Part shown: in pieces, positions 9,412-64,000 of the stretch | How positions within the stretch are numbered: position 1 is the first letter of the stretch | Layout: each line of letters opens with the position of its first letter | Assembly: GCA_048772705.1 (NCBI GenBank) | Contig: JBLWGC010000205.1 | Coordinates: 103,656 to 167,655 of the forward strand | Source of the DNA: Leidyana gryllorum EB-2025a | Taxonomy: Eukaryota; Protista; Apicomplexa | Length of the DNA stretch: 64,000 nucleotides | Reading direction: 5' to 3' | The notes under the pieces: model-generated | What the model was told of the DNA's origin: nothing | Databases searched by the model: none | Seen by the model: the letters and a program-made list of their open reading frames with translations, nothing else | Translations under genes and position numbers: made by a program

Positions 9412-10905
9412 TGTGAGTGAGAGAATTGAGCAATATATCTTGGTGGTTTGTGGGAGTTGCCCAATATATATATATCTCTTCCGTTTGTGCAGATACCTCA
9501 AAAGATGTACGAGTCTATAACTGTGGCGAGCTGTTTGTTGGATGATGAGAAGACGGCGGTGGCAGAGATAGATCGTGTTTTAGCTGCTTGTTTGCGGGAG
9601 AAGAAACCGGTATACATTTCAGTACCGTCTGATATGGCGATGGTGGATATTGAGCCGCCGAAAGACAAGTTTGAGTTACCTCCATTGGACAAGTCGGACG
9701 AGGATACGTTGAAAGAGGCTGTCGATGAGATCATTAGTCATTTGGCTAAGGCCAAGAAGCCCCTATTGCTTCCCGGAATTGAGTGCATTCGTCGCAACTT
9801 GACTGATGAGTTTGCGCAGTTGGTTGACAAGACGAACATTCCTTTTGCAACGATGATGCTGTGCAAAGGCATCTTGGACGAGGATCACGATCGGTTCATT
9901 GGACTCTACAGCGGCGCTCGCTCCCGCACGGAGGTCCAACAGCGCGTCCAGCAGGCCGATGTGATATTGGTTTTCGGCGAGAAGTACACCGACTTCAACA
10001 CTGGCGGATTCACGGCCGGCCTCACCCACCAAAACTCCATCTACATCGACTGGAACTGTGTTCGAGTCAACAATCACTATTTCCACAACATTTACATCCA
10101 CGATGTGCTGAAAAAGTTGGTCCAGGAGGCGCCCTCGTTCGATCCCAACGATCTACCCGTCTCCAAAGGCAAGGATCACTGCGCCCATCGACCAGAACTC
10201 GTCTTCAAGAAGGAGGGAAATACAAAGCTCACCATGGACCGCTTCTTCAAGCGTATGGCCACTCTTTTCAAGGACAAAGCAATTGTAATGGCCGAGACCG
10301 GCGCCTCCCTATTCTCAGCCGCTGAAACCAAACTGCCCCACAAAGCCACCTTCATGACTCAGACGTTCTACGGATCCATCGGTAAGACACACAGAAAACC
10401 CCAATTCACTCCACTTCGACCTCAGGATATACTGTTGGCGCCTGTTTGGGGGCCTGCATTGCTGTCAAGGACAAACCCGATGTCCCTGTCTATCTATTCG
10501 TCGGAGATGGCTCCTTCCAGGTCACTGGCCAAGATCTCTCTACAATGATTCGCTACGGCTGCAAACCCAACATATTCATCATCAACAACGACGGGTACAC
10601 CATCGAACGTACCATCTACGACAATGTCTACAACGACATTCAAATGTGGAAGTGAGTCCATAGACACCATACTCACACACACACTTACTAACTCCAGATA
10701 TGCCGACCTCCCAGAGATTTTCGGTGGAACAAAGGGGGCCAAATGCCAAACAGAAGAAGAATTGGAACGCGCAATTGAGCGTTTCGAGGCAGATAAAGAA
10801 TCTAGCGCTCGAGTATATGAAATTGTGTTAGACCGCTGGGATTGCAACAAGCTCCTCATTGCTGCTGGGAAGCTCATGGCCAAAAACAACAAACTCGACC
10901 AGTGA
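8966..10905 (+). CDS. PDC: Pyruvate decarboxylase / alpha-keto-acid decarboxylase (TPP-dependent), 5 exons
   Basis: MKLG|[36 protein letters not shown], catalytic HHTLGD, and TPP motif [17 protein letters not shown]...[10 protein letters not shown]. Four GT-AG introns. Confidence 0.93.
9367..9405. repeat. (TG)n microsatellite in PDC intron
   Basis: Perfect TG run directly after the GTAAGT donor. Confidence 0.95.
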
Positions 10906-27086: not shown

Positions 27087-29228
27087 TTACATGAACTCCG
27101 CGTGCAATCCCTCGTTCCCTTGACGCTTTGTGCCGTACAGACCTGCGGGCACTAATCTGGGCCCAAATTTCTCCATGAAGTCCAGCACGGTTCCATTTGT
27201 CCATCCAAAACCTTCTTGGGTGACGTACTCGCCATCAACCCCAGACTTTCCCAGTCGGGCGCAGTCGTATTTCTCACTGCAGACGCCGAAAAACTCGAAC
27301 CGGTCCAGTACAGTGTTGATGAATCTAGAAGCCCAGTTGATAGCTATCGTCATAGCCGGCCCCTTGTCGTCAATCGCTTTCTTGTGCAAATCCCAGAATC
27401 TTCCACCACACATGAATTCCACTGCAACATGGTGGTTGGGAGCCCACACATTCGGGCAATCCCATTGCAGTCCAGCTGTCACGTTGGTGCACACAATGCC
27501 ATATGGTCTGATTAAGCAGCTCAAATTTGAAGCGAGCTGTATTCTTCTCTCATCAGTCATCTTCTCTGGATTGACTCCAGCCCACAAAGGCCAGAAGGAG
27601 GCCGCACTGACCACCTTACTTAACTTCTTATTCTTCATATCATAGTCGAGCCACATTTCATTCTTCTCATCCCACAGATAATGCATCATGGCCTCGCGCC
27701 GGGCCTCCCTGGCGGCCAAATACTGTTCTTCACTCTCCTTCTTCCCTAAGAGAGCAGCAAAGTAGGCCAAATCTTCCTCGTACAGGAACATCAAGGAATT
27801 GAGGCAGCAAGGGATGATGTTGCATGTGTCAATGTCGACCAAACAGACCTTGTGAAGGACTTTTTCGACCCTCAGATCCGGCTTGATACCTTCTCCTTCA
27901 ACCGCTGGACGCAACCACCGACTGCTGAAATCCCATCCACTCTCCGCTGCCGCTCGGATAGCACGGAAGTGCTCGTCCAACGATTCAGCAGCGCCATTGA
28001 ACTCTTTGTACAGTCGACCAGTGATCTGATCGATACGATAAGACTCAGGACGAGGGGTACACTCAACACTGTAGAAGCGGTTCAGATATCCCTTCTTAGT
28101 CTGTCCACCAGTTGTGGGAATATCCAACTCGAGAACATGGCCGCGCTTGGCGTTCATCCACCACTGATGATAGTCCCGCTCCAAAAGCTGCATCGCATTG
28201 CGAACAAATTCAAGATCGTCAGTAGCGTGGTAGTAAGCTCGCAGCATGCAGGAGAGCATGGGAGGCTGACTCCGGTCGAGATAGTACTTTCTCAGGCCAT
28301 TCGGGATGAAACCCAGACGCTCAATGCAGAACAAAAAATTCTCCAACATCTCGCGAGCCTGAGTTAACATTCCACTTGAGAGAAGACCGAGCAAAATCCA
28401 GTAGCTGTCCCAATAGTAGATCTCAATGAATCGGCCGCCGGGTACAATGAAGGGCCGTGGTAAAGGAATCAGCGAGTTTCGATCAGGTGCCCAATGAGGC
28501 GACACGCGGCGGTAGAATTTCGGCCACATCTGGATCAGCTCGAGCCCCAATCGCTTCAGTCTTTGGAAGTATTGAGCTTGAGCTGTACTTTTTGCCTCCT
28601 CACTGATGAGGTTGCCAGCGATGACAACCCCTTTGCCTGATGATCCTTCATCCATCATCTCAGCCACTCGGTCTGCCCATAGGGCCGACGCAGTAGCTCG
28701 TCGTCCTAGGCGACGTTTTGTTACTTCTCCGTCTTTACCATTTGATGTGGTATCGTAGGCGGGCGGACCTCCCCGAGCGGCCATCTGCACCAACTTGCTC
28801 TCGGCCAAAGTCATCCGAGGAGCACTTGGAATAAGATGAGCAGCATTTGTGTTTCGCACTATCTCTGGGCGAAGTGTGAGGAGCTGACGGTCAGGTCCAC
28901 TTTTCAGCAGTTGATCACTGCTAACTCCAATCGTCGCGGTGGACGAGAGCCGGTGTTGTCGTGGCTTGTGGGTCATCGTAGGCGCATCGAATTGCGAAAG
29001 GAAGTTGTTGCGGCCAAGCTTGCAGGGCGGTATCAGCTCATGGCTGATCACATCCAGGTCTGACCCAGGCTGAGCAAGCATCTCCATGATCTCTTTGGGT
29101 TCCAGCTCGCGGCATGCCTTGGTTACTTCAGCCGGGTCTGTCTTCAACGGACAATCGACGATGGCTTTCACATCGCTGAAAAGACTCTCGTCTTTGATGA
29201 AAGCTTCCACCAAGGCGTTGTAGAACAT
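27087..29228 (-). CDS. Alpha,alpha-trehalase (GH37), apparently intronless
   Basis: VPGGRFIEIYYWDSYW, IPNGLRKYYLDRSQPP, PRPESY, AAESGWDFSSRW, QWDCPNVWAP and EKYD..GEYVTQEGFGWTNG. Confidence 0.95.
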   Translation of the reverse strand: MFYNALVEAFIKDESLFSDVKAIVDCPLKTDPAEVTKACRELEPKEIMEMLAQPGSDLDVISHELIPPCKLGRNNFLSQFDAPTMTHKPRQHRLSSTATIGVSSDQLLKSGPDRQLLTLRPEIVRNTNAAHLIPSAPRMTLAESKLVQMAARGGPPAYDTTSNGKDGEVTKRRLGRRATASALWADRVAEMMDEGSSGKGVVIAGNLISEEAKSTAQAQYFQRLKRLGLELIQMWPKFYRRVSPHWAPDRNSLIPLPRPFIVPGGRFIEIYYWDSYWILLGLLSSGMLTQAREMLENFLFCIERLGFIPNGLRKYYLDRSQPPMLSCMLRAYYHATDDLEFVRNAMQLLERDYHQWWMNAKRGHVLELDIPTTGGQTKKGYLNRFYSVECTPRPESYRIDQITGRLYKEFNGAAESLDEHFRAIRAAAESGWDFSSRWLRPAVEGEGIKPDLRVEKVLHKVCLVDIDTCNIIPCCLNSLMFLYEEDLAYFAALLGKKESEEQYLAAREARREAMMHYLWDEKNEMWLDYDMKNKKLSKVVSAASFWPLWAGVNPEKMTDERRIQLASNLSCLIRPYGIVCTNVTAGLQWDCPNVWAPNHHVAVEFMCGGRFWDLHKKAIDDKGPAMTIAINWASRFINTVLDRFEFFGVCSEKYDCARLGKSGVDGEYVTQEGFGWTNGTVLDFMEKFGPRLVPAGLYGTKRQGNEGLHAEFM

Positions 29229-29367
29229 TTTCACGGTCCGAAACCGGCCAGCCAACGCAGCCCAAAAAGAAAATTAATAGGAGGGTTAAATAGCCACACT
29301 TGTTTGGGCTCCAAAATCGGTGTTGAGGGGTGTTGCACGTGTGTTATACGAAAATCGAGGTTGCACA

Positions 29368-31398
29368 TCACTCAGGTTTCTGAGGATTTGTGTACGGCGA
29401 GTCGCCCATAATGCGTCCGCGTGTCTCTTTCACGCACAATGCGACAAACGCTATATACGCCGCTGAACAGACTGCACACACATATTAAGTTTGGTGTTCT
29501 CGCATGCTCCCCGTCGTGCTGATCTGCTATTGTGATGCAGGCTGAATTCTCAGTGCTCTTCACATCCACACCAGATCTCGCCCAACGTGAGGAGGGAGCA
29601 CCTCGTTCACTCACCAAAGAACACTGTGTAAGCGATTTTTGAGTCCAGCAGTCCGGCACCGAAGACCATAAGGATCGAAGCCAGCCAGTTCGTTGCCACA
29701 CAGATACTGGAAGCTTGCGCTTTCATATCCATTGGGAAGATCTCAAATAGGTAGAGCCAGGTGATCGGACCCGCTGCGACAGCGAAGAACACGACAAATA
29801 AACAAGCTCCTACTATAGCAGCAATCGTCAAACCGGTGGAAGGCTCTTCGTTCCATTGAGTCCAGTACATCACTGTGGCCGGAGCGACCGCAACGGTCAT
29901 TCCGATGGATCCGATCAACAACAGGGTGCGTCTGTAAGAGTGATCATCGGCAAGGTGATCAAATGGCCATACCTGCCAAGTCGCTCAATAAGTAACATAG
30001 GAATGAACGTGCACAGTAGGTTAACACAAGAGAGGCCGATGGACGCCACAGTAACCTTCGAGGGTTTCAGACCTGAACAAGGTAAGGTGTGCTTGAATCA
30101 AATGTTATTCTTACCAGCTTCTCCGAACAGCTTGTTGCTACTGGCGATGAAAGCATTGATACCAGTGATTTGCTGGAAAATGGCAATTCCAAGTCCAACC
30201 ATCAAAGCGGCCCTGTACCCTGGTTTCTTCAGCAGTTCTCCTAGAGGTGGTTTGTTTTGTTTAGACATTTCGTCAATGGCATGACCTCTCAGCTCCTGCA
30301 TCTCCAGTGAAACATCATCCTTGTGGTACATGCGTTGGAGCAATTGGGTGGCGTTGTGGTCATCACCGTGGCGAATGTAGTATTGTGGCGTTTCGAATGT
30401 GAAAATGGGTCCGAAGAATACAAGTGCCATGATGACCGGGATTATACCGAATCCAAGCATGATACGCCACCATGTCCTGACGATGAAATACCTCCAAATC
30501 TATCACAATGGAGCCTTACCGATCGAATTTACTAAGTTCCCAGTTCTTGACGACGACTTCATAGTCGCTCTCGGGCATGACTTGGAAAGCAAGACCAAGC
30601 ACGACCGCCAAGAGCTGTCCAATCACCAGGACTAACTGATGGAAGACTCTGAGTGACGGGATCCCGACTGCACCAATATCTGGTGACTTACCCATAGCGA
30701 CCTCGTTTCTCCTTTGGCGTCATTTCGGATATGTAAGCGGGAGTGACAACGGAGGTCACACCTACGCCAAACCCAACAATGAGTCGGGCCCATAGAAGGG
30801 ACGCAAATCCGGATGCGGTGACAGAGCTAACTACACCGACAAAGAACACGAGCAATGTGGTGAGCAAGAGCGTTCGATGCCCAATGACGATGAAGCGACC
30901 CGCTGTCAGAGCGCCCGCGGCCGCTCCCAAGAAGACAGCCGTGGACAAGCTCGATTTGTACCATTTGGCTTTAGAGCAATCTGAACGATAGATTATGTGG
31001 AGGATGCCAAAAATCTCAAACTTACCGACAACGGCTTCCACCCCACACCAGTTGAAATCTGCTGCGATGTAATCCACAGATGTGTTGAGCAGCGCCGTAT
31101 TGAAACCGAATAGGAAAGATCCAGTTGTAGCAATCAGCACCAAAACCAGGACGAAGGGGAAGCAGCTACAGAAAGAAGACACTTTGTCCACCAGGTTCCA
31201 ATTCACAAGAGTTTCAGACAAAGCAGGCAAAGGAATGCTATGAGACTTGCGTACGCTCGACTGGCTCCTTTCACCGTGGAACAGATCAGATGCTGCTTTA
31301 TCGACAGCATGGGGTTCTGACATTGAGGCGCGCAGCTCACGGGACCCATGATTATTATCATTGGGCGCTTTCGGGGGCGGCGGAGGGTCGGCGGACAT
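29368..31398 (-). CDS. MFS sugar porter, apicomplexan hexose transporter HT1/GT1-like, spliced
   Basis: GSFLFGFNTALLN, PAYISEMTPKEKRGRYG, ETPQYY, FQQITGINAF, GPITWLYLFEIFP and C-terminal VKETRGRIMGDSPY (PfHT1-like KETKG..GTSPY). Confidence 0.9.
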
Positions 31399-31428
31399 TT
31401 CCAAGGACTATGCAAACGTGTGTGCAAT

Positions 31429-47558: not shown

Positions 47559-47894
47559 AGTGTGCGAAAAAAAGTGGTCTACTGGTGTGGGTCGATGTGG
47601 GTGTCAAGTGGTGTGGACCTCAAGTGAGCCCCTTGCCCCGACGTTGGCTTTTGGGACTGTTCTGCAATAGTCACATTGGCTGCCCGTTTGTGGTATGGGC
47701 AGCCCCAATCTTGACAGCACACACGTGTGTATGTAGCATCTTGGAGCCGGTTTTGTTGGTTTTGATGCGCTGTGTCCGTCGGCCGAGTTTGTTTCGTGTT
47801 GAGTGATGCTGGCATTGCCAAGCGGTGGTTGATTGACTGATTAGCTGGAGATGTGAGTGGTGAGCTTTTGTTGGTCGTGTTTTTTGGGTGTCCT

Positions 47895-49445
47895 ATGTCA
47901 ATCGAAACGATCGGAAAGGCGGGTTTGTTCCTGATCGAGTTGCTGGTGTTGTTAGTATGTGTGGCTCTCGGAGCCCGTATAGGTGGGTTGGCGATCGGAT
48001 TCTATGGAGGACTGGGTATGGCCCTCTATTGTTTCTTCTTCCAAATGGATGCGGGAATGATTCCGTACGATGTGATGATGATCATTATGGCGTGCGTTAG
48101 CGCTGTTGGTGCGATGCAGGCTGCTGGTGGATTGGACTATGCAGTATATTTATGTGAGAGGTTACTTCGTTCACGTCCCAGTTGGATAATATTTCTGGCG
48201 CCTTTGACGACTTTCTTGCTTACAGTGTTGGCGGGAACTGGGCACACGACTTACAGTGCTCTGCCGGTGATAATAGAAGTGTCCAAGGACAGCGGTATCA
48301 AGCCGTGTCGGCCGTTGTCGATAGCGGTTGTAGCTAGTCAGCTGGCGATTTGCGCAAGTCCAATAAGCGCGGCAATAACATGGTTGGATGAGTCTGTGAA
48401 GAGCGAAGAGCAGTACGATTTTGGATATCTTCATTTACTGGGAGTGCTGATTCCCTCTTGTTTCATCGCCACATTCATTGGAGCAGTGGTGGTGAATTTG
48501 CGCAAAGGAAAGTATCTGTACGACGATCCTGTGTTTATCAAACGGTTAGCTCGAGGGGATTGCAAGATGCGTACGACTCTTCCAGACGAGACGATAGAGA
48601 AGGTTCGAGCTTTACGGTTAGAAATGGCCGAAGCCTCAAGAGCGAAGCGCAATGACGATAGGCTGACGCCATATCAATTGATGGTCAATAGCGCCAATGC
48701 TGACGGGGATGGCGCTTCTGCGGTTGGAGTCGAAGATAATCTGTCTTTCCTGATGCTCCCATCCGCGCTGGGTGCAAATCGCTCCGTTATACTGCCGGGT
48801 GCCCGACGAAGTTGTTTGATCTTCTTGCTGGGAGTGGGCTGCATAGTGGGATACTCTATATGCATAAGCCCTACCGTGGTACCCAGATGGCGGTCGGAAG
48901 ACAAGCATATCCGCAGCTCAGACGCCGTAGTTGTCATATTCCTTACGGTGGCAGCTCTGATCATCCATTTCACTCACATTGATCCCGCCTCCATCACCCT
49001 CACTTCAACTTTCCGTTCGGGCCTCAATGGCTGTGTTTGCGTACTCGGTGTCGCCTGGATGGGCAATACTTTTGTCACGAATCAATTAGACCACATACGC
49101 AGCATTTCTGGAAACTTATTCGAAGTCGCGTCATGGCTCTTCCCTCTGATTGCCTTTGTGGCCGCTATCTTACTCTACAGTCAGGCGTCTACTCTCATGG
49201 CATTATGGCCGCTTGCGTTCGATCTCCACGTCAACGGACTCACTATGGTGGCCTCGGTGCCCGCCACCGGTGCTCTTTTCATTCTGCCCACCTATCCCAC
49301 ACTTCTCACGGCCGCGGAGATGGACGACACTGGATCTACCAAACTTGGCCGATACGTCTTTGATCATTCTTTCATTCTTCCCGGACTCCTCTCAATCGTT
49401 CTCGCGGTTGTACTCGCTTATGGATTCGGGGCCATCATACTGTGA
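47895..49445 (+). CDS. Anaerobic C4-dicarboxylate transporter, DcuA/DcuB family (bacterial type), intronless, 516 aa
   Basis: LGARIGGLAIGFYGGLG, AMQAAGGLDY, LAGTGHTTYSALPVI, PCRPLSIAVVASQLAICASPISAA, VLGVAWMGNTF, LLYSQAST, LFILPTYPT..AAEMDDTGSTKLGRYVFDHSF. Confidence 0.93.
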   Translation: MSIETIGKAGLFLIELLVLLVCVALGARIGGLAIGFYGGLGMALYCFFFQMDAGMIPYDVMMIIMACVSAVGAMQAAGGLDYAVYLCERLLRSRPSWIIFLAPLTTFLLTVLAGTGHTTYSALPVIIEVSKDSGIKPCRPLSIAVVASQLAICASPISAAITWLDESVKSEEQYDFGYLHLLGVLIPSCFIATFIGAVVVNLRKGKYLYDDPVFIKRLARGDCKMRTTLPDETIEKVRALRLEMAEASRAKRNDDRLTPYQLMVNSANADGDGASAVGVEDNLSFLMLPSALGANRSVILPGARRSCLIFLLGVGCIVGYSICISPTVVPRWRSEDKHIRSSDAVVVIFLTVAALIIHFTHIDPASITLTSTFRSGLNGCVCVLGVAWMGNTFVTNQLDHIRSISGNLFEVASWLFPLIAFVAAILLYSQASTLMALWPLAFDLHVNGLTMVASVPATGALFILPTYPTLLTAAEMDDTGSTKLGRYVFDHSFILPGLLSIVLAVVLAYGFGAIIL

Positions 49446-49787: not shown

Positions 49788-51741
49788 CTACCCATCCATG
49801 GCATACTCGTGGTGGTCATCCTCTGGCGGGTTGGGAGGGGGCACTGACGGGCTTTGCAGAGGTAATTGCCATCGGCTTAGTGTTCTGCAATGGTTGCTGG
49901 TGAACTGGCGTCTCATCCAGTCGGATTTAAAGTCGATCAGTCCGATATTGAATGGCGTTCGGCCTTTGACGGAGTATCCTGTGGGGTCTGTCGCTGCCAA
50001 TACTTGGTGGTACCAGTTGTTGAATGTGTGGGATCGGAGTGCGTCTCGCTCCCATCCCTCGCTAACGGCCGAGTCCCTCTTGTGCATGAGACAGATGAGT
50101 GCGGAGAAGGACTGCCAATAGAGTTCGAGTCTGTCATAGTGCTGTATTTCGGCGGCGTAGAGCTCGAAGAGGCTCTCAACACCGATTCTTGAGAATATCT
50201 GGCGGAGTGTTTCGTCCCGATAGTCCCCGCTGACCATCTCCAATATAACCTGAGACCAAAACGGCTGATAGCACTGAACCCCTCCAACACACAACCTGAT
50301 TGGTCGGTCCGTCCGTCTCCGCACAGCGTCGAGTATCAAATACCAGTAAATAATCAATTCAGAACTACTCAGATAATCTGGAATGGCTAAGTGCTGTACT
50401 CTGTACGTCTCCAGGACATCGAGGATAAATACCGCGACCCTATGGGCCTCGGTATCGTCTTCGTCCAATTCCCCTACCCATTCTGCCACAACTTGACACC
50501 CATCTGACACTCGTAGCGGAGGCAAATCGTCCTCCAATTGCTCTTCGTCGTAGTTGAGCTCAATCTCCACTCTCCGGGCGATCTCCAACCGTCGATTGAG
50601 GGTCCGAGACTCTTCACGTAACCTGTCCAATGTCACACGCTGGATGTGTTTGGTGAGCATCGGCCCTCTGTTCGACCTTGCCTCGTCGACGGCGGCCCCC
50701 TGTTTCTTTCTCACGGCCTCTGGGTGGATTGGAATGGCCCAAATACCCTCAGGGGTATCTTCTAACCCGTCCATTGGCACCACACATTCGGTGGAGGACA
50801 CACAAATGGGTTCGGTGACGTCCCATAAGGCCCGATGCAGGGTCGACTCTCTGTTCTTCATGTGACGCCAGTAGTTTGTGAACCCGTTGTACACGCCGTC
50901 AGCCTCTCTAAGCAACGGGATGTCGAAATAGTGCCAAAACTCACTTGGGATCTCCCGGCCATCGCGGCCTTTCACCGTCCGTTTCCGGGATGTCATGAAT
51001 AAACCACACATGCATCCCATCAATCTCATACTCGGCCTCGGGACGGATGACGGTGATTCCGGGTTGCTGCTCAGCGGACAGAGTCTCTCCTGCGTCGCTG
51101 TTAGTGATTAAAGGCTCACTCCCTGGCACCGCGGGCGAGTTGGTGATCGGTTGATACCCTCTGGGATACTGCGTGTCAATGATGACATGCGAATGAGATG
51201 TCTTCAAAAGATCTCGAATCCGTGACTCCCGACTGTTCAATATATCACACTTCAAGTACGGCAAACTGTCCCGATGGATTGCCAGAGTCCGCATCCTTTC
51301 GGCCTCGACAGTCACCGGGGCGGTAAGGGAACCGCGAACATAGAGATAACGAAGATTGGGAAATGTCAACACTGCTCGATCGTGACTGGTCTCCGTGGCA
51401 CATAGTGTCAGGTTTTGCACACTCGCCGATCCAATAGACGAAAAGGCTTCTGCGACCTCCCAACAAGAGTCTCCATAGATTGTCAAAGTGGTGACATTCC
51501 TCCCAAGATACTTCAAACCAGCGCGACCCCCCTTCTCTACGATGTCAATTCCCTGAACAAATTCTTCCCACACCACGTCATCAAACCATGCATGGGCTCT
51601 CTCAAGATAATTCCCAACCCACTGCCTACACCGACGTGATACCATACCTAAGCAGACCAGGTCTTTCAGTGATAGAAACTGGAATAGAGTTGGTGCAAAC
51701 ATTCGGATCGAACGCCCGTATAAGAAGTCATTTAACTTCAT
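49788..51741 (-). CDS. F-box/LRR-like protein (638 aa, one intron), divergent paralog of the tandem-array genes
   Basis: F-box-like PTLFQFLSLKDLVCLGMVSRRCRQWV. The 37-nt GTGAGT..TTAG intron at 50944-50908 joins ORFs 50941..51753 and 49788..51029 in frame. Motifs are shared with the array proteins. Confidence 0.75.
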
Positions 51742-52096: not shown

Positions 52097-52729
52097 ATGA
52101 CGGAGGCTAATAAGTTGTGCATCTTCGAACGCCTGCGCAAGGGCGAACTCATATCGCCTGAGGATCCAGACGAGCACTTGCTGCTCGAAGCCTCCTATGC
52201 CACGAGGAAATTGCTGATTCAGATGAACAACGCCCCCGACCCCATCCAAGTGAGACATCTACTGAGTCAAATCACCAACACTGACATCGATCCCACTGTT
52301 AACGTCTTCACCCCCTTACACATCAATTATGGGAAGAATATAAAACTTGGGAAAAATGTTTTCATTAACTTCAACTGCACAATGCTGGATCTCGGCGGCA
52401 TCACCGTTGAAGACGACGTACTCATAGGACCTAATGTCAGCATACTGTCGGAAGGACACCCGATTTCCTTGCAAGACCGCCACGCACTCGCCACTGGAGC
52501 TATTCTAATAAAAAGACATGCCTGGATCGGCGCAGGAGCCGTCATAATGAAAGGCGTGACCATCGGCGAAAACTCCATTGTCGCCGCAGGCGCCATAGTC
52601 TCAAAAGATGTTCCTAGCAACACCATCGTTGGTGGCATTCCTGCCAGAACTCTTAGGGATATCGATGTGCCTGCTGCTAAGACTACGGCTCAAGTCCTCA
52701 GTGGTGGCGATTTAGACAAGCACTCTTGA
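52097..52729 (+). CDS. Sugar O-acetyltransferase (maltose/galactoside acetyltransferase-like, hexapeptide repeat), bacterial type, intronless
   Basis: PLHINYGKNIKLGKNVFINFNCTMLDLGGITVEDDVLIGPNV..GHP and AWIGAGAVIMKGVTIGENSIVAAGAIVSKDVPSNTIVGGIPAR. Confidence 0.93.
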   Translation: MTEANKLCIFERLRKGELISPEDPDEHLLLEASYATRKLLIQMNNAPDPIQVRHLLSQITNTDIDPTVNVFTPLHINYGKNIKLGKNVFINFNCTMLDLGGITVEDDVLIGPNVSILSEGHPISLQDRHALATGAILIKRHAWIGAGAVIMKGVTIGENSIVAAGAIVSKDVPSNTIVGGIPARTLRDIDVPAAKTTAQVLSGGDLDKHS

Positions 52730-52920
52730 TCAGATCAGGACAACAAGCAAGACGATTGCCGGCGGTCGCGATCAATCACCGAGCGAAAGGCACATTCGTG
52801 TTTTTCCGGGGGACCAATACTGCACTAAACATTGTTAGCGCTCTATTCGCTCAAATTTCAATTCTCAGACCTTCACCCGACTCGTGATGAGACATGGGGA
52901 TACAGGCGGTATAGAGAGTG

Positions 52921-53052
52921 TGCGGACGTATTTTGACAGTCGGGCCTATCAGTTTCTTAGAGCTGAGCCAGCGAGTGTCTGTGTAAGCTCACATTCCGGA
53001 AGAAAATGGAGGATCTGAGTCCATATGATTCCACTGAAGCCGATTTGCCTCA
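52921..53052 (-). pseudogene. 5' remnant of an array F-box gene
   Basis: MRQIGFSGIIWTQILHFLP is intact, then a ~34-bp foreign insertion with an early stop. Homology is lost below about 52920. Confidence 0.8.
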
Positions 53053-53344
53053 TTTAACGGTCGACACCTTAACCGGAAACACACACTGCACACACACCGA
53101 ACACCGATCGACGGAGCCGCCGTGAGGCCCGATAATTGAAATGGAATCGTTCGAGCGCTTCCCAGAGCATGTCTGTCATCTTAGCGTTGCATCATTAATA
53201 ATAGTGTGCACAACAGTACCGGTACAATCGTATCAGTCAACAGTATTGCATTTTACATTTTGATCGGTTGCAAAATCGACATCTATTAAATTCATAATGT
53301 GTCATCATTGTGGTGCACAACACAAACTTATTACCGCTCAAATC

Positions 53345-55296
53345 TCAGTATCTCCCCGACTCGCCGAATGCTGGCCACAGAGCCTTTCTGATTCCCCAAT
53401 CGTGAAGTTCTGAGAATCTTCCTGACCACAGTCGATCAATGAGCCATTTGTGATCAGATGGCAAACGTCCTATTTTCATTTGAGACAGTCCCCACTTCGG
53501 CTGTGCCGCTTCTGACACCTCAGTGAGCAGTCCCCGATACCATAGCTGGATATGTATCAGCGGGAGTCTGCCGAAGCCTGAATGAATACCCCGCCAATAC
53601 TTTATCTGCCCATTCAGCCGTCGCCAAGCCGCCGACTTGTCGGTGAACGAGGAAAGCAAATAGTCATTTATCTCGCGCTTTTCAACTCCTAAACTTTCCA
53701 GAACGAGGGCCGCAGTCTCATCTGTGTAGCGGCCGGATATCATCTCGCTGATCGCTCGAGATAGAGGGCGCGTGAAAATCACAACACTCTGGAACCCGTG
53801 CCGCAGTCGCTTCCCAGAGGACTTCCAGATTGTGTGAGCGATCAAATAAAGCCACACGAGGTTCTCGAAGTATCCGTCCCAATCACTTATTGCCACACTG
53901 TCAATATCGAATCGCTCCAGAGCCTCTCTATATTCCGGGGCGTTCAGCCCATCCACAACCGGGGAGACACCACGGAGACCAAAGCTGAGGACGCGATGGC
54001 TCCCAGAGGGCCGTGGACAGTGTTCTGGTCGCCACGTTAGCCTTAGCTGCTGCCAAACGCTCAGCGTCAGTTCAACTCGCTCCAATGAGGCTAAGTCAGA
54101 GAAGTCTAAGGTGTCCACTCTCACTGTCGGGTCGGCAGTATTCACATAAACGAGACTCTTAGCCGTCGACCACTCCAACGAGTCAATTTTGAATCCGTCA
54201 GGCCATAAATAAATAACCCCATCCGATTCCGGAACAAATCCGGGGTCCTCTCGGAGTAGTGGTAGTCGCCAGATCCAATCAGGGAGGGTGGAGAGATCTC
54301 CGTTCTCAGCCAACTTCAGCCACGAAGGACACAGTATCTCACCAGGAGGCCCTTCACGCCGCAAGAACACAGAAAGCCACAGACACATACGCACCAATCC
54401 TTCCACACATTCTTTCGGAAAGAATTCACGTCGGCATCTCCACTGCTCTCTCAGGAAATCCCGAACGATTCCACATTCACTGTAGCATTACATCACAATA
54501 TTTCCAACAAACTGATCGCTTACCGCTCAGTCGTCGGACATCCGTCCTCGAGATGGACACTCCCTGGTGCCGTGGGATTATTGTGTGTCCACGCCGACGG
54601 CTGTGGCAATAGCAGGTGACACACACCTGTCTTCTTCCATCTATCATCGTGGGCGGAATCGTCTCCAAAATCGAGATTCCTCACTCCCCGCCACGCGTAC
54701 TCCATCCTCGTGTCGGCTACGTATATCACTGGAAACGGCGTCGAGGGAAGGGCGGCTGTGAAAGGTATCACAACCCATTCGGCTAATGAATGGGCTATGC
54801 GATCCCGACATGCTGCCGGCGCAATCAGTGTGCGTAGCTGTGGAGCAATCAACCGCAGACGAGTGAAGGGTGGTATGTCGACATCCACAGAAAATATTTC
54901 CAAAAGCGGAAGGGTCCACGTAATCTGGAGGAGATCCCTGGATAGGGTCCGACCCACCAAGTGCAACAATCTGAGTACGGGGAGACCCTTGACCATCAAA
55001 CGTTTCAGAAACTCAGCGGGTGCGTCATTCTGGTCCGCGGTTCCGTCTATTTCCACATACAAAAAGGTCAGCGATTCCCGAGAGCGATCCACCCAGCTCC
55101 AGAACCAAGAAGTGTGATATATCTGTCGTAGCAATACATCACAGAGGTACAGGTGTGTGGATCGGAATGGGGATGAAGGCGATTCAATGAGTGCGCGGAA
55201 GTATTTTGACAGTCGGGCTATCCGTGAAAGCTCGCATGTCGGAAGAAAATGGAGGATCTGAGTCCATATGATTCCACTGAAGCCGATTTGCCTCAT
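53345..55296 (-). CDS. F-box/LRR-like protein copy A (635 aa; intron 54523-54480)
   Basis: F-box-like IWTQILHFLPTCELSRIARLSKYFRALIESP and LxxLxL repeats. A 44-nt GTAAGC..CTACAG intron joins the 258-aa and 353-aa ORFs in frame (773+1135 nt). Confidence 0.8.
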
Positions 55297-55581
55297 TTAA
55301 CGGTCGACACCTTAACCGGAAACACACACTGCACACACATCGAACACCGATCAGCGGCCGCCGTGAGGCCCGATAGTTGGAATGGAATCGTTCGAGCGCT
55401 CCCCAGAGCGTTTCTGTCATCTTAGCGTTGCATCATTAATAAAAGTGATGCACAACTGTACCGGTACAATCGTATCAGTCGACAGTATGGCACATTTTGA
55501 TCGGTTGCAAAATCGACATCCAGCAAATTCATAATGTGTCATGATTGTGGTGCACAACACAAACTTATTACCGCTCAAATC

Positions 55582-57530
55582 TCAGTATCTCCCCGCCTCG
55601 CGGAATGCTGGCCACAGAGCCTTTCTGATTCCCCAATCGTGAAGCTCTGAGAATCTTCCGGACCACAGTCGATCAATGAGCCATTTGTGATCAGATGGCA
55701 AACGTCCTATTTCCAGTTGAGACAATCCCCACTTCGGCTGTGCCGCTTCTGACACCTCAGTGAGCAGTCCCCGATACCACAGCTGGATATGTATCAGCGG
55801 GAGTCTGCTGAAGCCTAAATGAACAACCGGCCAACACTTTATCTGCCCATTCAGCCGTCGCCAAGCCGCCGACTTGTCGGTGAACGAGGAAAGCAAATAG
55901 TCATTTATCTCGCGCTTCTCAACGCCGAAACCTTCCAGAACGAGAGTCACAGTCCCATCTGTGTAGCGGCCGGATATCATCTCGCTGATCGATCGAGATA
56001 GAGGGCGCGTGAAAATCACAACACTCTGGAACCCGTGCCGCAGTCGCTTCCCAGAGGACTTCCAGATTGTGTGAGCGATCAAATAAAGCCACACGAGGTT
56101 CACGAAGTTTCCGCCCGAATCACATATTGCCACACTGTCAATGTCGAACCGCTCCAGAGCCTCTCTATATTCCGGGGCGTTCAGTCCATCCACAACCGGG
56201 GAGACACCACGGAGACCAAAGCTGAGGACGCGATGGCTCCCAGAGGGCCGTGGACAGTGGTCTGGTCGCCACGTTAGCCTTAGCTGCTGCCAAACGCTCA
56301 GCGGAAGTTCAACTCGCTCCAGTGAGGCTAAGTCAGAGAAGTCTAAGGTGTCCACTCTCACTGACGGGTCGGCAGTATTCACATAAATGAGACTCTTAGC
56401 CGTCGACCACTCCAACGAGTCAATTTTGAATCCGTCAGGCCATAAATAAATAACGCCTTCCGATTCCGGAACAAATCCGGGGTCCTCTCGGAGTAGTGGT
56501 AGTCGCCAGATCCAAGTAGGGAGGGTGGAGAGATCTCCGTTCTCAGCCAACTTCAGCCACGAAGGACACAGTATCTCACCAGGAGGCCCTTCACGCCGCA
56601 AAAACACAGAAAGGCACAGACACATACGCACCAATCCTTCCACACATTCTTTCGGAAAGAATTCACGTCGGCACCTCCACTGCTCTCTCAGGAAATCCCG
56701 AACGATTCCACATTCACTGTAATATTATATCACAATATTTCCAACAAAGTGATCCCTTACCGCTCAGTCGTCGGACATCCGTCCTCGAGATGGACACTCC
56801 CTGGTGCCGTGGAATTATTGTGTGTCCAAGCCGACGGCTGTGGCAATAGCAGGTGACACACACCTGTCTTCTTCCATCTATCATCGTGGGCGGAATCGTC
56901 TCCGAAGGCGCTATCCCTGACTCCCCGCCACGCGTACTCCATCCTCGTGTCGGCTACGTATATCACTGGAAACGGCGTCGAAGGAAAGGCTGTGAAAGGT
57001 ATCACAACCCGTCTGGCTAATGAATGGGATATGCGATCCCGACATGCTGCCGGCGCAATCAGTGTGCGTAGCTGTGGAGCAATCAACCGCAGACGAGTGA
57101 AGGGTGGTATGTCGACATCCACAGAAAATATTTCCAAAAGCGGAAGGGTCCACGTAATCTGGAGGAGATCCCGGGATAGGGTCCGACCCACCAAGTGCAA
57201 CAATCTGAGTACGGGGAGACCCTTGACCATCAAACGTTTCAGAAACTCAGCGGATGCGTCATTCTGGTCCGCGCTTGCAAATATTTCCACAAACAGAAAG
57301 GTCAGCGATTCCCGAGAGCGATCCACCCAGCTCCAGAACCAAGAAGTGTGATGTATTTGTCGTAGCAATACATCACAGAGGTACAGGTGTGTGGATCGGA
57401 ATGGGGATGAAGGCGATTCAATGAGTGCGCGGAAGTATTTTGACAGTCGGGCTATCCGTGAAAGCTCGCATGTCGGAAGAAAATGGAGGATCTGAGTCCA
57501 TATGATTCCGCTGAAGCCGATTTGCTTCAT
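55582..57530 (-). CDS. F-box/LRR-like protein copy B (intron 56760-56717)
   Basis: Same structure as copy A, with a GTAAGG..TACAG intron. Confidence 0.8.
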
Positions 57531-57815
57531 TTAACGGTCGACACCTTAACCGGAAACACACACTGCACACACACCGAACACCGATCGGCGGCCGCCGTGA
57601 GGCCCGATAGTTGGAATGGAATCTTTCGAGCGCTCCCCAGAGCGTTTCTGTCATCTTAGCGTTGCATCATTAATAAAAGTGATGCACAACTGTACCGGTA
57701 CAATCGTATCAGTCGACAGTATGGCACAATTTGATCGGTTGCAAAATCGACATCTATTAAATTCATAATGTGTCATCATTGTGGTGCACAACACAAACTT
57801 ATTACCGCTCAAATC

Positions 57816-59764
57816 TCAGTATCTCCCCACCTCGACGAATGCTGGCCACAGAGCCTTTCTGATTCCCCAATCGTGAACCTCTGAGAATCTTCCCGACCAC
57901 AGTCGATCAATGAGCCATTTGTGATCAGATGGCAAACGTCCTATTTTCATTTGAGACAATCCCCACTTCGGCTGTGCCGCTTCTGACACCTCAGTGAGCA
58001 GTCCCCGATACCACAGCTGGATATGTATCAGCGGGAGTCTCCCGGAGCCTGAATGAACACCCGGCCAACACTTTATCTGCCCATTCAGCCTTCGCCAAGC
58101 CGCCGACTTGTCGGTGAACGAGGAAAGCAAATAGTCATTTATCTCGCGCTTCTCAACGCCGAAACCTTCCAGAACGAGGGCCACAGTCCCATCTGTGTAG
58201 CGGCCGGATATCATCTCGCTGATCGATCGAGATACAGGGCGCGTGAAAATCGGAACACTCTGGAACCCGTGCCGCAGTCGCTTCCCAGAGGACTTCCAGA
58301 TTGTGTGAGCGATCAAATAAAGCCACACGAGGTTCACGAAGTGTCCGTCCCAATCACTTATTGCCACACTGTCAATATCGAATCGCTCCAGAGCCTCTCT
58401 ATATTCCGGGGCGTTCAGTCCATCCACAACCGGGGAGACACCACGGTGACCAAAGCTGAGGACGCGATGGCTCCCAGAGGGCCGTGGACAGTGTTCTGGT
58501 CGCCACGTTAGTCTCAGCTGCTGCCAAACGCTCAGCGGCAGTTCAACTCGCTCCAATGAGGCTAAGTCAGAGAAATCTAAGGTGTCCACTCTCACAGTCG
58601 GGTCGGCAGTATTCACATAAACGAGACTCTTAGTCGTCGACCACTCCAATGGGTCAGTTTTGAATCCGTCAGGCCATAAATAAATAACCCCACCCGATGC
58701 CGGAACAAATCCGGGGTCCTCTCGGAGTAGTGGTAGTCGCCAGATCCAAGTAGGGAGGGTGGAGAGATCTCCGTTCTCAGCCAACTTCAGCCACGAAGGA
58801 CACAGTATCTCACCAGGAGGCCCTTCACGCCGCAAGAACACAGAAAGCCACAGACACATACGCGCCAATCCTTCCACACATTCTTTCGGAAAGAATTCAC
58901 GTCGGCATCTCCACTGCTCTCTCAGGAAATCCCGAACGATTCCACATTCACTGTAGCATTACATCACAATATTTCCAACAAACTGATCGCTCACCGCTCA
59001 GTCGTCGGACATCCGTCCTCGAGATGGACACTCCCTGGTGCCGTGGGATTATTGTGTGTCCACGCCGACGGCTGTGGCAACAGCAGGTGACACACACCTG
59101 TCTTCTTCCATCTATCATCGTGGGCGGAATCGTCTCCGAACTCGAGATTCCTCACTCCCCGCCACGCGTACTCCATCCTCGTGTCGGCTACGTACATCAC
59201 TGAAAACGGCGTCGAAGGAAAGGCTGTGAAAGGTATCACAACCCATTCGGCTAATGAATGTGATATGCGAGCCCGACATGCTTCCCGCGCAATCAGTGTG
59301 CGTAGCTGTGGAGCAATCAACCGCAGACGAGTGGAGGGTGGTATGTCGACATCCACAGAAAATATTTCCAAAAGCGGAAGGGTCCACGTAATCTGGAGGA
59401 GATCCCTGGATAGGGTCCAACCCACCAAGTGCAACAATCTGAGTACGGGGAGACCCTTGACCATCAAACGTTTCAGAAACTCAGTGGACGCGTCATTCTG
59501 GTCCGCGCTTGCAAATATTTCCACACACAGAAAGGTCAGCGATTCCCGAGAGCGATCCACCCAGCTCCAGAACCAAGAAGTGTGATATATCTGTCGTAGC
59601 AATACATCACAGAGGTACAGGTGTGTAGATCGGAATGGGGATGAAGGCGATTCAATGAGTGCGCGGAAGTATTTTGACAGACGGGCTATCCGCGAAAGCT
59701 CACGTGTCGGAAGAAAATGGAGGATCTGAGTCCATATGATTCCACTGAAGCCGATTTGCCTCAT
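57816..59764 (-). CDS. F-box/LRR-like protein copy C
   Basis: Same structure; the donor variant GTGAGC retains GT. Confidence 0.8.
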
Positions 59765-60056
59765 TTAACGGTCGACACCTTAACCGGAAACACACACTGC
59801 ACACACACCGAACACCGATCGACGGAGCCGCCGTGAGGCCCGATAATTGAAATGGAATCGTTCGAGCGCTTCCCAGAGCATGTCTGTCATCTTAGCGTTG
59901 CATCATTAAAAATAGTGATGCACAACAGTACCGGTACAATCGTATCAGTCAACAGTATTGCATTTTACATTTTGATCGGTTGCAAAATCGACATCTATTA
60001 AATTCATAATGTGTCATCATTGTGGTGCACAACACAAACTTATTACCGCTCAAATC

Positions 60057-62008
60057 TCAGTATCTCCCCGACTCGCCGAATGCTGGCCACAGAGCCTTTC
60101 TGATTCCCCAATCGTGAAGTTCTGAGAATCTTCCTGACCACAGTCGATCAATGAGCCATTTGTGATCAGATGGCAAACGTCCTATTTTCATTTGAGACAG
60201 TCCCCACTTCGGCTGTGCCGCTTCTGACACCTCAGTGAGCAGTCCCCGATACCATAGCTGGATATGTATCAGCGGGAGTCTGCCGAAGCCTGAATGAATA
60301 CCCCGCCAATACTTTATCTGCCCATTCAGCCGTCGCCAAGCCGCCGACTTGTCGGTGAACGAGGAAAGCAAATAGTCATTTATCTCGCGCTTTTCAACTC
60401 CTAAACTTTCCAGAACGAGGGCCGCAGTCTCATCTGTGTAGCGGCCGGATATCATCTCGCTGATCGCTCGAGATAGAGGGCGCGTGAAAATCACAACACT
60501 CTGGAACCCGTGCCGCAGTCGCTTCCCAGAGGACTTCCAGATTGTGTGAGCGATCAAATAAAGCCACACGAGGTTCTCGAAGTATCCGTCCCAATCACTT
60601 ATTGCCACACTGTCAATGTCGAACCGCTCCAGAGCCTCTCTATATTCCGGGGCGTTCAGTCCATCCACAACCGGGGAGACACCACGGAGACCAAAGCTGA
60701 GGACGCGATGGCTCCCAGAGGGCCGTGGACAGTGTTCTGGTCGCCACGTTAGCCTCAGCTGCTGCCAAACGCTCAGCGGCAGTTCAACTCGCTCCAGTGA
60801 GGCTAAGTCAGAGAAGTCTAAGGTGTCCACTCTCACTGTCGGGTCGGCAGTATTCACATAAACGAGACTCTTAGCCGTCGACCACTCCAATGGGTCAGTT
60901 TTGAATCCGTCAGGCCATAAATAAATAACGCCTTCCGATTCCGGAACAAATCCGGGGTCCTCTCGGAGTAGTGGTAGTCGCCAGATCCAATCAGGGAGGG
61001 TGGAGAGATCTCCGTTCTCAGCCAACTTCAGCCACGAAGGACACAGTATCTCACCAGGAGGCCCTTCACGCCGCAAGAACACAGAAAGCCACAGACACAT
61101 ACGCACCAATCCTTCCACACATTCTTTCGGAAAGAATTCACGTCGGCATCTCCACTGCTCTCTCAGGAAATCCCGAACGATTCCACATTCACTGTAGCAT
61201 TACATCACAATATTTCCAACAAACTGATCGCTTACCGCTCAGTCGTCGGACATCCGTCCTCGAGATGGACACTCCCTGGTGCCGTGGGATTATTGTGTGT
61301 CCACGCCGACGGCTGTGGCAATAGCAGGTGACACACACCTGTCTTCTTCCATCTATCATCGTGGGCGGAATCGTCTCCAAAATCGAGATTCCTCACTCCC
61401 CGCCACGCGTACTCCATCCTCGTGTCGGCTACGTATATCACTGGAAACGGCGTCGAGGGAAGGGCGGCTGTGAAAGGTATCACAACCCATTCGGCTAATG
61501 AATGGGCTATGCGATCCCGACATGCTGCCGGCGCAATCAGTGTGCGTAGCTGTGGAGCAATCAACCGCAGACGAGTGAAGGGTGGTATGTCGACATCCAC
61601 AGAAAATATTTCCAAAAGCGGAAGGGTCCACGTAATCTGGAGGAGATCCCTGGATAGGGTCCGACCCACCAAGTGCAACAATCTGAGTACGGGGAGACCC
61701 TTGACCATCAAACGTTTCAGAAACTCAGCGGGTGCGTCATTCTGGTCCGCGGTTCCGTCTATTTCCACAAACAGAAAGGTCAGCGATTCCCGAGAGCGAT
61801 CCACCCAGCTCCAGAACCAAGAAGTGTGATATATCTGTCGTAGCAATACATCACAGAGGTACAGGTGTGTAGATCGGAATGGGGATGAAGGCGATTCAAT
61901 GAGTGCGCGGAAGTATTTTGACAGACGGGCTATCCGCGAAAGCTCACGTGTCGGAAGAAAATGGAGGATCTGAGTCCATATGATTCCACTGAAGCCGATT
62001 TGCCTCAT
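60057..62008 (-). CDS. F-box/LRR-like protein copy D
   Basis: Same structure as copy A. Confidence 0.8.
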
Positions 62009-62300
62009 TTAACGGTCGACACCTTAACCGGAAACACACACTGCACACACACCGAACACCGATCGACGGAGCCGCCGTGAGGCCCGATAATTGAAATGGA
62101 ATCGTTCGAGCGCTTCCCAGAGCATGTCTGTCATCTTAGCGTTGCATCATTAAAAATAGTGATGCACAACAGTACCGGTACAATCGTATCAGTCAACAGT
62201 ATTGCATTTTACATTTTGATCGGTTGCAAAATCGACATCTATTAAATTCATAATGTGTCATCATTGTGGTGCACAACACAAACTTATTACCGCTCAAATC

Positions 62301-64000
62301 TCAGTATCTCCCCGACTCGCCGAATGCTGGCCACAGAGCCTTTCTGATTCCCCAATCGTGAAGTTCTGAGAATCTTCCTGACCACAGTCGATCAATGAGC
62401 CATTTGTGATCAGATGGCAAACGTCCTATTTTCATTTGAGACAGTCCCCACTTCGGCTGTGCCGCTTCTGACACCTCAGTGAGCAGTCCCCGATACCATA
62501 GCTGGATATGTATCAGCGGGAGTCTGCCGAAGCCTGAATGAATACCCCGCCCATACTTTATCTGCCCATTCAGCCGTCGCCAAGCCGCCGACTTGTCGGT
62601 GAACGAGGAAAGCAAATAGTCATTTATCTCGCGCTTTTCAACTCCTAAACTTTCCAGAACGAGGGCCGCAGTCTCATCTGTGTAGCGGCCGGATATCATC
62701 TCGCTGATCGCTCGAGATAGAGGGCGCGTGAAAATCACAACACTCTGGAACCCGTGCCGCAGTCGCTTCCCAGAGGACTTCCAGATTGTGTGAGCGATCA
62801 AATAAAGCCACACGAGGTTCTCGAAGTATCCGTCCCAATCACTTATTGCCACACTGTCAATGTCGAACCGCTCCAGAGCCTCTCTATATTCCGGGGCGTT
62901 CAGTCCATCCACAACCGGGGAGACACCACGGAGACCAAAGCTGAGGACGCGATGGCTCCCAGAGGGCCGTGGACAGTGTTCTGGTCGCCACGTTAGCCTC
63001 AGCTGCTGCCAAACGCTCAGCGGCAGTTCAACTCGCTCCAGTGAGGCTAAGTCAGAGAAGTCTAAGGTGTCCACTCTCACTGTCGGGTCGGCAGTATTCA
63101 CATAAACGAGACTCTTAGCCGTCGACCACTCCAACGAGTCAATTTTGAATCCGTCAGGCCATAAATAAATAACCCCACCCGATGCCGGAACAAATCCGGG
63201 GTCCTCTCGGAGTAGTGGTAGTCGCCAGATCCAATCAGGGAGGGTGGAGAGATCTCCGTTCTCAGCCAACTTCAGCCACGAAGGACACAGTATCTCACCA
63301 GGAGGCCCTTCACGCCGCAAGAACACAGAAAGCCACAGACACATACGCACCAATCCTTCCACACATTCTTTCGGAAAGAATTCACGTCGGCATCTCCACT
63401 GCTCTCTCAGGAAATCCCGAACGATTCCACATTCACTGTAGCATTACATCACAATATTTCCAACAAACTGATCGCTTACCGCTCAGTCGTCGGACATCCG
63501 TCCTCGAGATGGACACTCCCTGGTGCCGTGGGATTATTGTGTGTCCACGCCGACGGCTGTGGCAATAGCAGGTGACACACACCTGTCTTCTTCCATCTAT
63601 CATCGTGGGCGGAATCGTCTCCAAAATCGAGATTCCTCACTCCCCGCCACGCGTACTCCATCCTCGTGTCGGCTACGTATATCACTGGAAACGGCGTCGA
63701 GGGAAGGGCGGCTGTGAAAGGTATCACAACCCATTCGGCTAATGAATGGGCTATGCGATCCCGACATGCTGCCGGCGCAATCAGTGTGCGTAGCTGTGGA
63801 GCAATCAACCGCAGACGAGTGAAGGGTGGTATGTCGACATCCACAGAAAATATTTCCAAAAGCGGAAGGGTCCACGTAATCTGGAGGAGATCCCTGGATA
63901 GGGTCCGACCCACCAAGTGCAACAATCTGAGTACGGGGAGACCCTTGACCATCAAACGTTTCAGAAACTCAGTGGACGCGTCATTCTGGTCCGCGCTTGC
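62301..64000 (-). CDS. F-box/LRR-like protein copy E (5' end outside window)
   Basis: Same structure, truncated by the window edge. Confidence 0.78.

Follow-up and report, generated by a model that had tools for sequence, protein, structure and literature searches.

In the FBXL adaptors of SCF ubiquitin ligases (FBXL2, FBXL3, FBXL5, Skp2, and TgFBXL2), an N-terminal F-box is followed by LRR strands, and an order of F-box, LRR, and C-terminal domain like that of the family analyzed here occurs in the plant F-box/LRR/FBD and S-locus F-box proteins. Clustered, recombining, and diversifying paralogs are also familiar from the apicomplexan var, vir, Tpr, and SAG/SRS families, the products of which are secreted or displayed at the surface. 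In Toxoplasma, 18 F-box genes are predicted, four of them common to Plasmodium (PMC6685633), and L-type F-box genes number two (PMC11166348). For the Caenorhabditis families FBXA/FTH and FBXB/FBA_2, PMC8120010 describes tandem clusters, birth-and-death evolution, and a conserved F-box combined with a selected binding region, features that recur in the family analyzed here.

The array considered in this analysis lies in the window, the whole stretch of 64,000 nucleotides of Leidyana gryllorum DNA that was analyzed, and consists of five head-to-tail units of 2234–2244 nt (53345–64000). The spacings of 2237, 2234, 2241, and 2244 nt bear out the initial description of at least five units of ~2.24 kb. 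Each unit holds two minus-strand ORFs of 257–258 and 353 aa, which in copies A–D are joined by a 44-nt phase-2 intron into a single open frame of 634–635 aa. The array extends to the end of contig C205 (15.5-Mb assembly, 237 contigs), where the window also ends, and copy E is therefore incomplete in its 5′ part. Our best reading, to which we give about even chances, is that such genes encode cytosolic proteins, variable in sequence, that bring substrates to the SCF ligase of the parasite itself and are caught in an arms race. The finding is the family as a whole and not this single cluster. The features of the locus are as follows:

54524–55296, minus strand: copy A exon 1, with the F-box (aa ~5–42), about 4–5 short LRR-type repeats, and a linker
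54480–54523, minus strand: copy A intron, 44 nt, phase 2, GTAAG...CTACAG, 36% GC
53345–54479, minus strand: copy A exon 2, a predicted ~377-aa alpha/beta C-terminal domain without a known family or fold match
55582–57530, minus strand: copy B (exon 1 57530–56761, intron 56760–56717, exon 2 56716–55582)
57816–59764, minus strand: copy C (exon 1 59764–58995, intron 58994–58951, exon 2 58950–57816)
60057–62008, minus strand: copy D (exon 1 62008–61236, intron 61235–61192, exon 2 61191–60057)
62301–64000, minus strand: copy E, its 5′ part lost at the contig end (intron 63479–63436, exon 2 63435–62301)
52894–53053, minus strand: truncated sixth copy, an F-box start with stop codons after 34 codons
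55297–55581, no strand: inter-unit spacer, 285–292 nt between all units, likewise 53054–53344
49788–51741, minus strand: old paralog, ~24% identity, same architecture, 37-nt phase-2 intron 50944–50908

The truncated sixth copy is a pseudogene stub that closes the array, and the inter-unit spacers are presumed to hold promoter and UTRs. The gaps around the array measure 285–345 nt and not the ~30 nt first reported. Elsewhere in the window, an intronless gene for a DcuA/DcuB anaerobic C4-dicarboxylate transporter (47853–49445, plus strand; Pfam E 8e-115), a mainly bacterial family, is a candidate for horizontal transfer. So is, from bacteria, an intronless hexapeptide-repeat acetyltransferase of the maltose/galactoside type (52097–52729, plus strand), located in the interval that separates the array from the old paralog. 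A TPP enzyme resembling pyruvate or indolepyruvate decarboxylase (9448–10548, plus strand) fits a fermentative metabolism. A trehalase gene (27087–31404, minus strand) adjoins genes for a sugar transporter and a kinase-like protein, in an order kept in another gregarine contig (L056). The trehalase marks the organism as a gregarine apicomplexan, a relative of malaria parasites: identity is 60–61% with the trehalases of Gregarina sp. Poly1 and Blabericola migrator, and 56% with that of G. niphandrodes. In comparisons with this protein, lepidopteran trehalase-like proteins of 1150–1190 aa outscore ordinary insect trehalases by far.

Even without reads, support for the predicted 44-nt phase-2 intron is strong, because paralogs and a related organism keep the GT(A/G)AG donor in place and intronless paralogs read through the junction. 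Of 33 paralogous ORF pairs (not all of them independent), 27 have the stop codon of the first ORF inside this donor, versus 6.8% of the stop triplets in the window; in a second, related organism, five of five ORF pairs carry the same donor. Paralog introns span 37–62 nt and all three lengths modulo 3, with the frame restored at the same place. Both halves lie in one ORF in the intronless paralogs L034, L044, and P0007, reading through the same W-P-x-x-x junction, and two more continuous ORFs, which may be transcripts, span short contigs of run SRR28734874. An alternative 74-nt intron was ruled out by the paralog alignment. The sequence-only reading had treated each ORF pair as one gene with intact frames and splice sites; both points hold, with GT..AG borders and an open frame in copies A–D and the same intron in copy E.

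Searches and folding were done exon by exon, with the model of a naturally intronless paralog standing in for the joined protein. The F-box-like motif proposed at the N-terminus exceeds the Pfam cut-off (24.2 bits against 20.5, residues 10–42), and 22 of 31 family members match the Pfam F-box at E ≤ 0.1. The LRR-like segments are likewise corroborated: against PDB, a profile of the 31 first exons matches FBXL2 best (E 7e-6), then FBXL3, FBXL5, Skp2, and many LRR chains. The language-model neighbours of exon 1 are F-box clusters, and two family members weakly match LRR_At5g56370. The model of the intronless paralog contains three F-box helices (6–14, 18–24, and 29–37; pLDDT 83–95) followed by LRR strands. 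FBXL5, FBXL17, FBXL2, and FBXL3 are among its top structural matches, at weak Z scores of 5.5–6.5, in a list full of LRR proteins (Z ≤ 6.5); the LRR arc is short. One member (L054:70–4440, P0011, run SRR28734874) carries a 540-aa N-terminal extension ahead of the F-box, without a Pfam match.

By motif and predicted fold, the array proteins qualify as F-box/LRR proteins, with putative SCF membership. The LP-motif proline is common in F-box proteins and not universal. Here it is found in only two of 31 F-boxes, which counts against the SCF adaptor reading; it is missing in the other 29, often replaced by Ser, and the acidic residue two positions later is mostly lost too. This proline has been reported as a condition for Cul1 binding and assembly, and the point is disputed (PMC3098594). 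These losses, together with the low structural Z scores to FBXL proteins, would fit Skp1 partners outside SCF, or binders derived from F-box proteins, that keep the F-box-like fold without recruiting Cul1 and bind or sequester their targets. We consider this unlikely, as constraint along the protein is strongest in the F-box and the proline-less FBXL14 and FBXL18 co-purify with Cul1 (PMC3098594).

The second exon sets these proteins further apart from the FBXL adaptors, since about 4–5 short LRRs are followed here by a ~370-aa domain without a match. As modeled, exon 2 appears to be a lineage-specific alpha/beta domain, in which strands alternate with helices and the end is helical (copy A, mean pLDDT 84.2, pTM 0.87). 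The C-terminal domain, which the sequence-only reading did not recognize, has no Pfam match among 36 exon-2 sequences, no PHROG or PDB sequence match, and no match among viral or metagenome contigs. Fold comparison was likewise negative, with Foldseek E > 0.02, a best Z of 5.0, an Atlas TM of 0.37, and viral E > 0.03. In a word-indexed protein search the exon-2 alignment retrieved nothing and a full-length homolog matched only itself. TIM-barrel matches (Z ≤ 5.0, Foldseek E > 0.02, Atlas TM ≤ 0.37) were dismissed as a generic beta/alpha arrangement. The C-terminal domains FTH, FBA_2, FBD, and FBA matched none of the 36 exon-2 sequences in Pfam, nor the fold. Comparison of the tail with the N-terminal LRR gave no detectable duplication; a degenerate second LRR-like arc is possible.

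The family comprises ~90 paired loci (about 93 by hand) on 26 contigs, some broken and many in arrays, in contrast to the two L-type genes of Toxoplasma (PMC11166348). Across the genome the tail profile has at least 111 matches and the exon-1 profile at least 118, both lower bounds. One set of family genes and pseudogenes is present in two copies of opposite orientation on a single contig (C202:298708–303160 and 320852–325309), and a telomere-pattern search gave one stray match. Among 1.84 billion protein representatives only 14 match the tail. The ten that were looked up are Logan proteins (25–46% identity), those traced came from three runs, and no named gregarine protein was matched in this search. 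At least one Logan source is a related organism, because the gene adjoining its family member is 83% identical and syntenic. The family evolves by birth-and-death, with old orthologs and recent bursts: in a tree built by a quick method, six pairs with one member from each organism are supported, and several recent bursts, of which this array is one, are confined to a single species. The proposal of a lineage-specific family is supported as to its restriction, with a size far beyond the array first seen, and our literature search found no report of such an F-box family in gregarines.

Selection was assessed in the array and in a 19-member sister subfamily. In the latter, dN/dS is 0.11 in the F-box, 0.6 in the LRR and linker, and 1.26 in one patch of the tail. 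Model M2a beats M1a in exon 1 and exon 2 (p 2e-7 and 5e-14), the site classes having omega of about 3 (6% of sites) and about 5.7 (2% of sites), in tests that are in-house implementations and that gene conversion, only partly controlled, can inflate. When segments were tested with their own trees, M2a was kept in four of seven, with omega classes of 3–5.7, and not in the F-box. These site models suggest that the sister subfamily combines an F-box under purifying selection with positively selected sites in the LRR and tail. Within the array, copies differ by 0.7–4%, dN/dS is 0.5–0.6 with clustered replacements, and the differences among copies A–D are biased to synonymous ones (12/18, p 2e-4). 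Gene conversion is evident, since 326 of 595 informative site pairs are incompatible and the copies are mosaic. The array and the sister subfamily are only ~28% identical, and the codons that vary in the array fall on the high-omega sites of the sister subfamily (mean 1.17 versus 0.50 and 1.04 versus 0.57; shift p 0.004 and 0.019), while synonymous-only changes give a null result. The sites singled out in the codon analysis are residues 50–54, 80–86, and 206–209 of exon 1 and residues 34–36, 198–205, 294–303, and 334–338 of exon 2. The M1a/M2a comparison and this overlap support diversifying selection outside the F-box, in agreement with the earlier suggestion of a selected, variable family.

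The same data bear on whether these are SCF adaptors for ordinary parasite proteins, in stage turnover or development, amplified for dosage or by drift, with relaxed constraint and gene conversion mimicking positive selection. An array-wide dN/dS that does not exceed 1, the mosaic copies, several broken members, and the stable orthologs are in keeping with this, as is the control of stage-specific genes by Toxoplasma FBXL2 (PMC11166348). It nevertheless seems improbable, given that the omega classes of 3–5.7 persist segment by segment, that the same positions change in two such distant subfamilies, and that ~90 loci here compare with 18 F-box genes in Toxoplasma (PMC6685633).

Under the reading of variable SCF adaptors, the conserved F-box would dock on the parasite's single Skp1 and hence on Cul1-Rbx1; the genome holds one Skp1, two clear cullins, and Rbx1. 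Caenorhabditis has expanded Skp1 too, and the presence of one Skp1 here is counted against this reading. The variable LRR and C-terminal patches would bind substrates, which would then be ubiquitinated and degraded. Old single-copy members may serve stable targets, and young arrays such as this one would grow through unequal crossing-over, be reshuffled by gene conversion, and be under selection to keep pace with rapidly changing proteins within the parasite cell itself. The class of target is a guess, most plausibly selfish or foreign: the many intact Ty3/Gypsy retroelements of the genome, viruses, or toxin-antidote elements. The further proposal, that this repertoire evolved independently, in the manner of nematodes and plants, on a new substrate-binding fold and serves as the parasite's own intracellular immunity against retroelements or viruses, is tentative and on balance doubtful.

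The genome had been taken to be minimal and is not: it measures 15.5 Mb and contains at least 150 matches to reverse transcriptase, many of them in frames >1100 aa. These loci lie on many small contigs and often have identical scores. For an apicomplexan this is a heavy load of recent retroelements; transposable elements make up 3.09% of the G. niphandrodes genome (PMC9141347). An intact-looking Ty3/Gypsy-type polyprotein (protease, RT, RNase H, and integrase; L032:5367–9899, contig C35) lies within an intronless F-box array, where it apparently splits one family member. Two Piwi/Argonaute genes could handle retroelements instead, which counts against the adaptor reading. Their Piwi domains are at C121:41751–42719 and C121:208175–209125, and one is ~1.5 kb from a family member (C121:38111–40230).

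The same selection signature would be expected from genetic conflict within the species, in which the proteins act as antidotes of toxin-antidote pairs or as compatibility factors at syzygy and gamete fusion. Plant S-locus F-box proteins, with their role in self/non-self recognition, offer a parallel. Nematode F-box genes of hybrid incompatibility act in this way (PMC11573670). We hold this to be quite improbable, since the family is spread over 26 contigs and not confined to one locus, and no linked toxin-like partner was seen beside this array.

Apicomplexan effectors normally enter the secretory path. The array products are predicted from their sequences to be cytosolic proteins of ~635 aa: the ATG directly follows an in-frame stop, and no more than about ten residues separate Met from the start of the F-box. 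No signal-peptide-like hydrophobic stretch was found, as the sequence-only reading had stated. In a crude screen of hydropathy and start context, a hydrophobic leader was absent in 30 of 31 members, and the ortholog of the exception lacks it; that member would gain a hydrophobic N-terminal extension if an upstream ATG is used (L044:2288–2350). The sequences leave no room for a secretion signal, which makes host manipulation, raised as a possibility at first, unlikely and unsupported. Secreted effectors that hijack the SCF of the insect host are accordingly a very remote prospect, although diversifying selection fits host conflict and F-box effectors and expansions exist in pathogens, as in Chlamydiae (PMC4209131).

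Mis-assembly of a single locus, or the merging of haplotypes, is scarcely credible as the source of the array: the array reaches a contig end, copies A, D, and E are ~99% identical to each other, and the C–D spacer is identical, but copies B and C lie ~4% away from the others with an in-frame 3-nt indel, the A–D differences are biased to synonymous ones, arrays of this kind are present on many contigs as well as in the second organism, and the location of the array-variable codons at high-omega sites of the sister subfamily argues against assembly error. Doubt is limited to the exact number of A/D/E-like copies.

With respect to the systems described above, the family of putative SCF adaptors may work like the nematode and plant F-box expansions (PMC8120010), outside the FBXA, FBXB, FBD, and FBA classes. 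It differs from the Caenorhabditis families in having no Pfam FTH or FBA_2 match, a single Skp1, and an independent origin, in a unicellular parasite, and from the plant FBD and FBA families in a C-terminal domain that matches neither. Unlike var, vir, Tpr, and SAG/SRS, it lacks a signal peptide and includes an adaptor domain of ubiquitin ligases. Exon 2 adds a confidently predicted domain without structural match. Apicomplexans are thought to be poor in F-box genes, and their big variable families face the host. Should the adaptor reading be true, plants and nematodes would be joined by a third, independent example of an arms race involving ubiquitin adaptors, here in a single-celled parasite, and a positively selected, non-secreted F-box family of ~90 members would point to an enemy inside the parasite's own cell.
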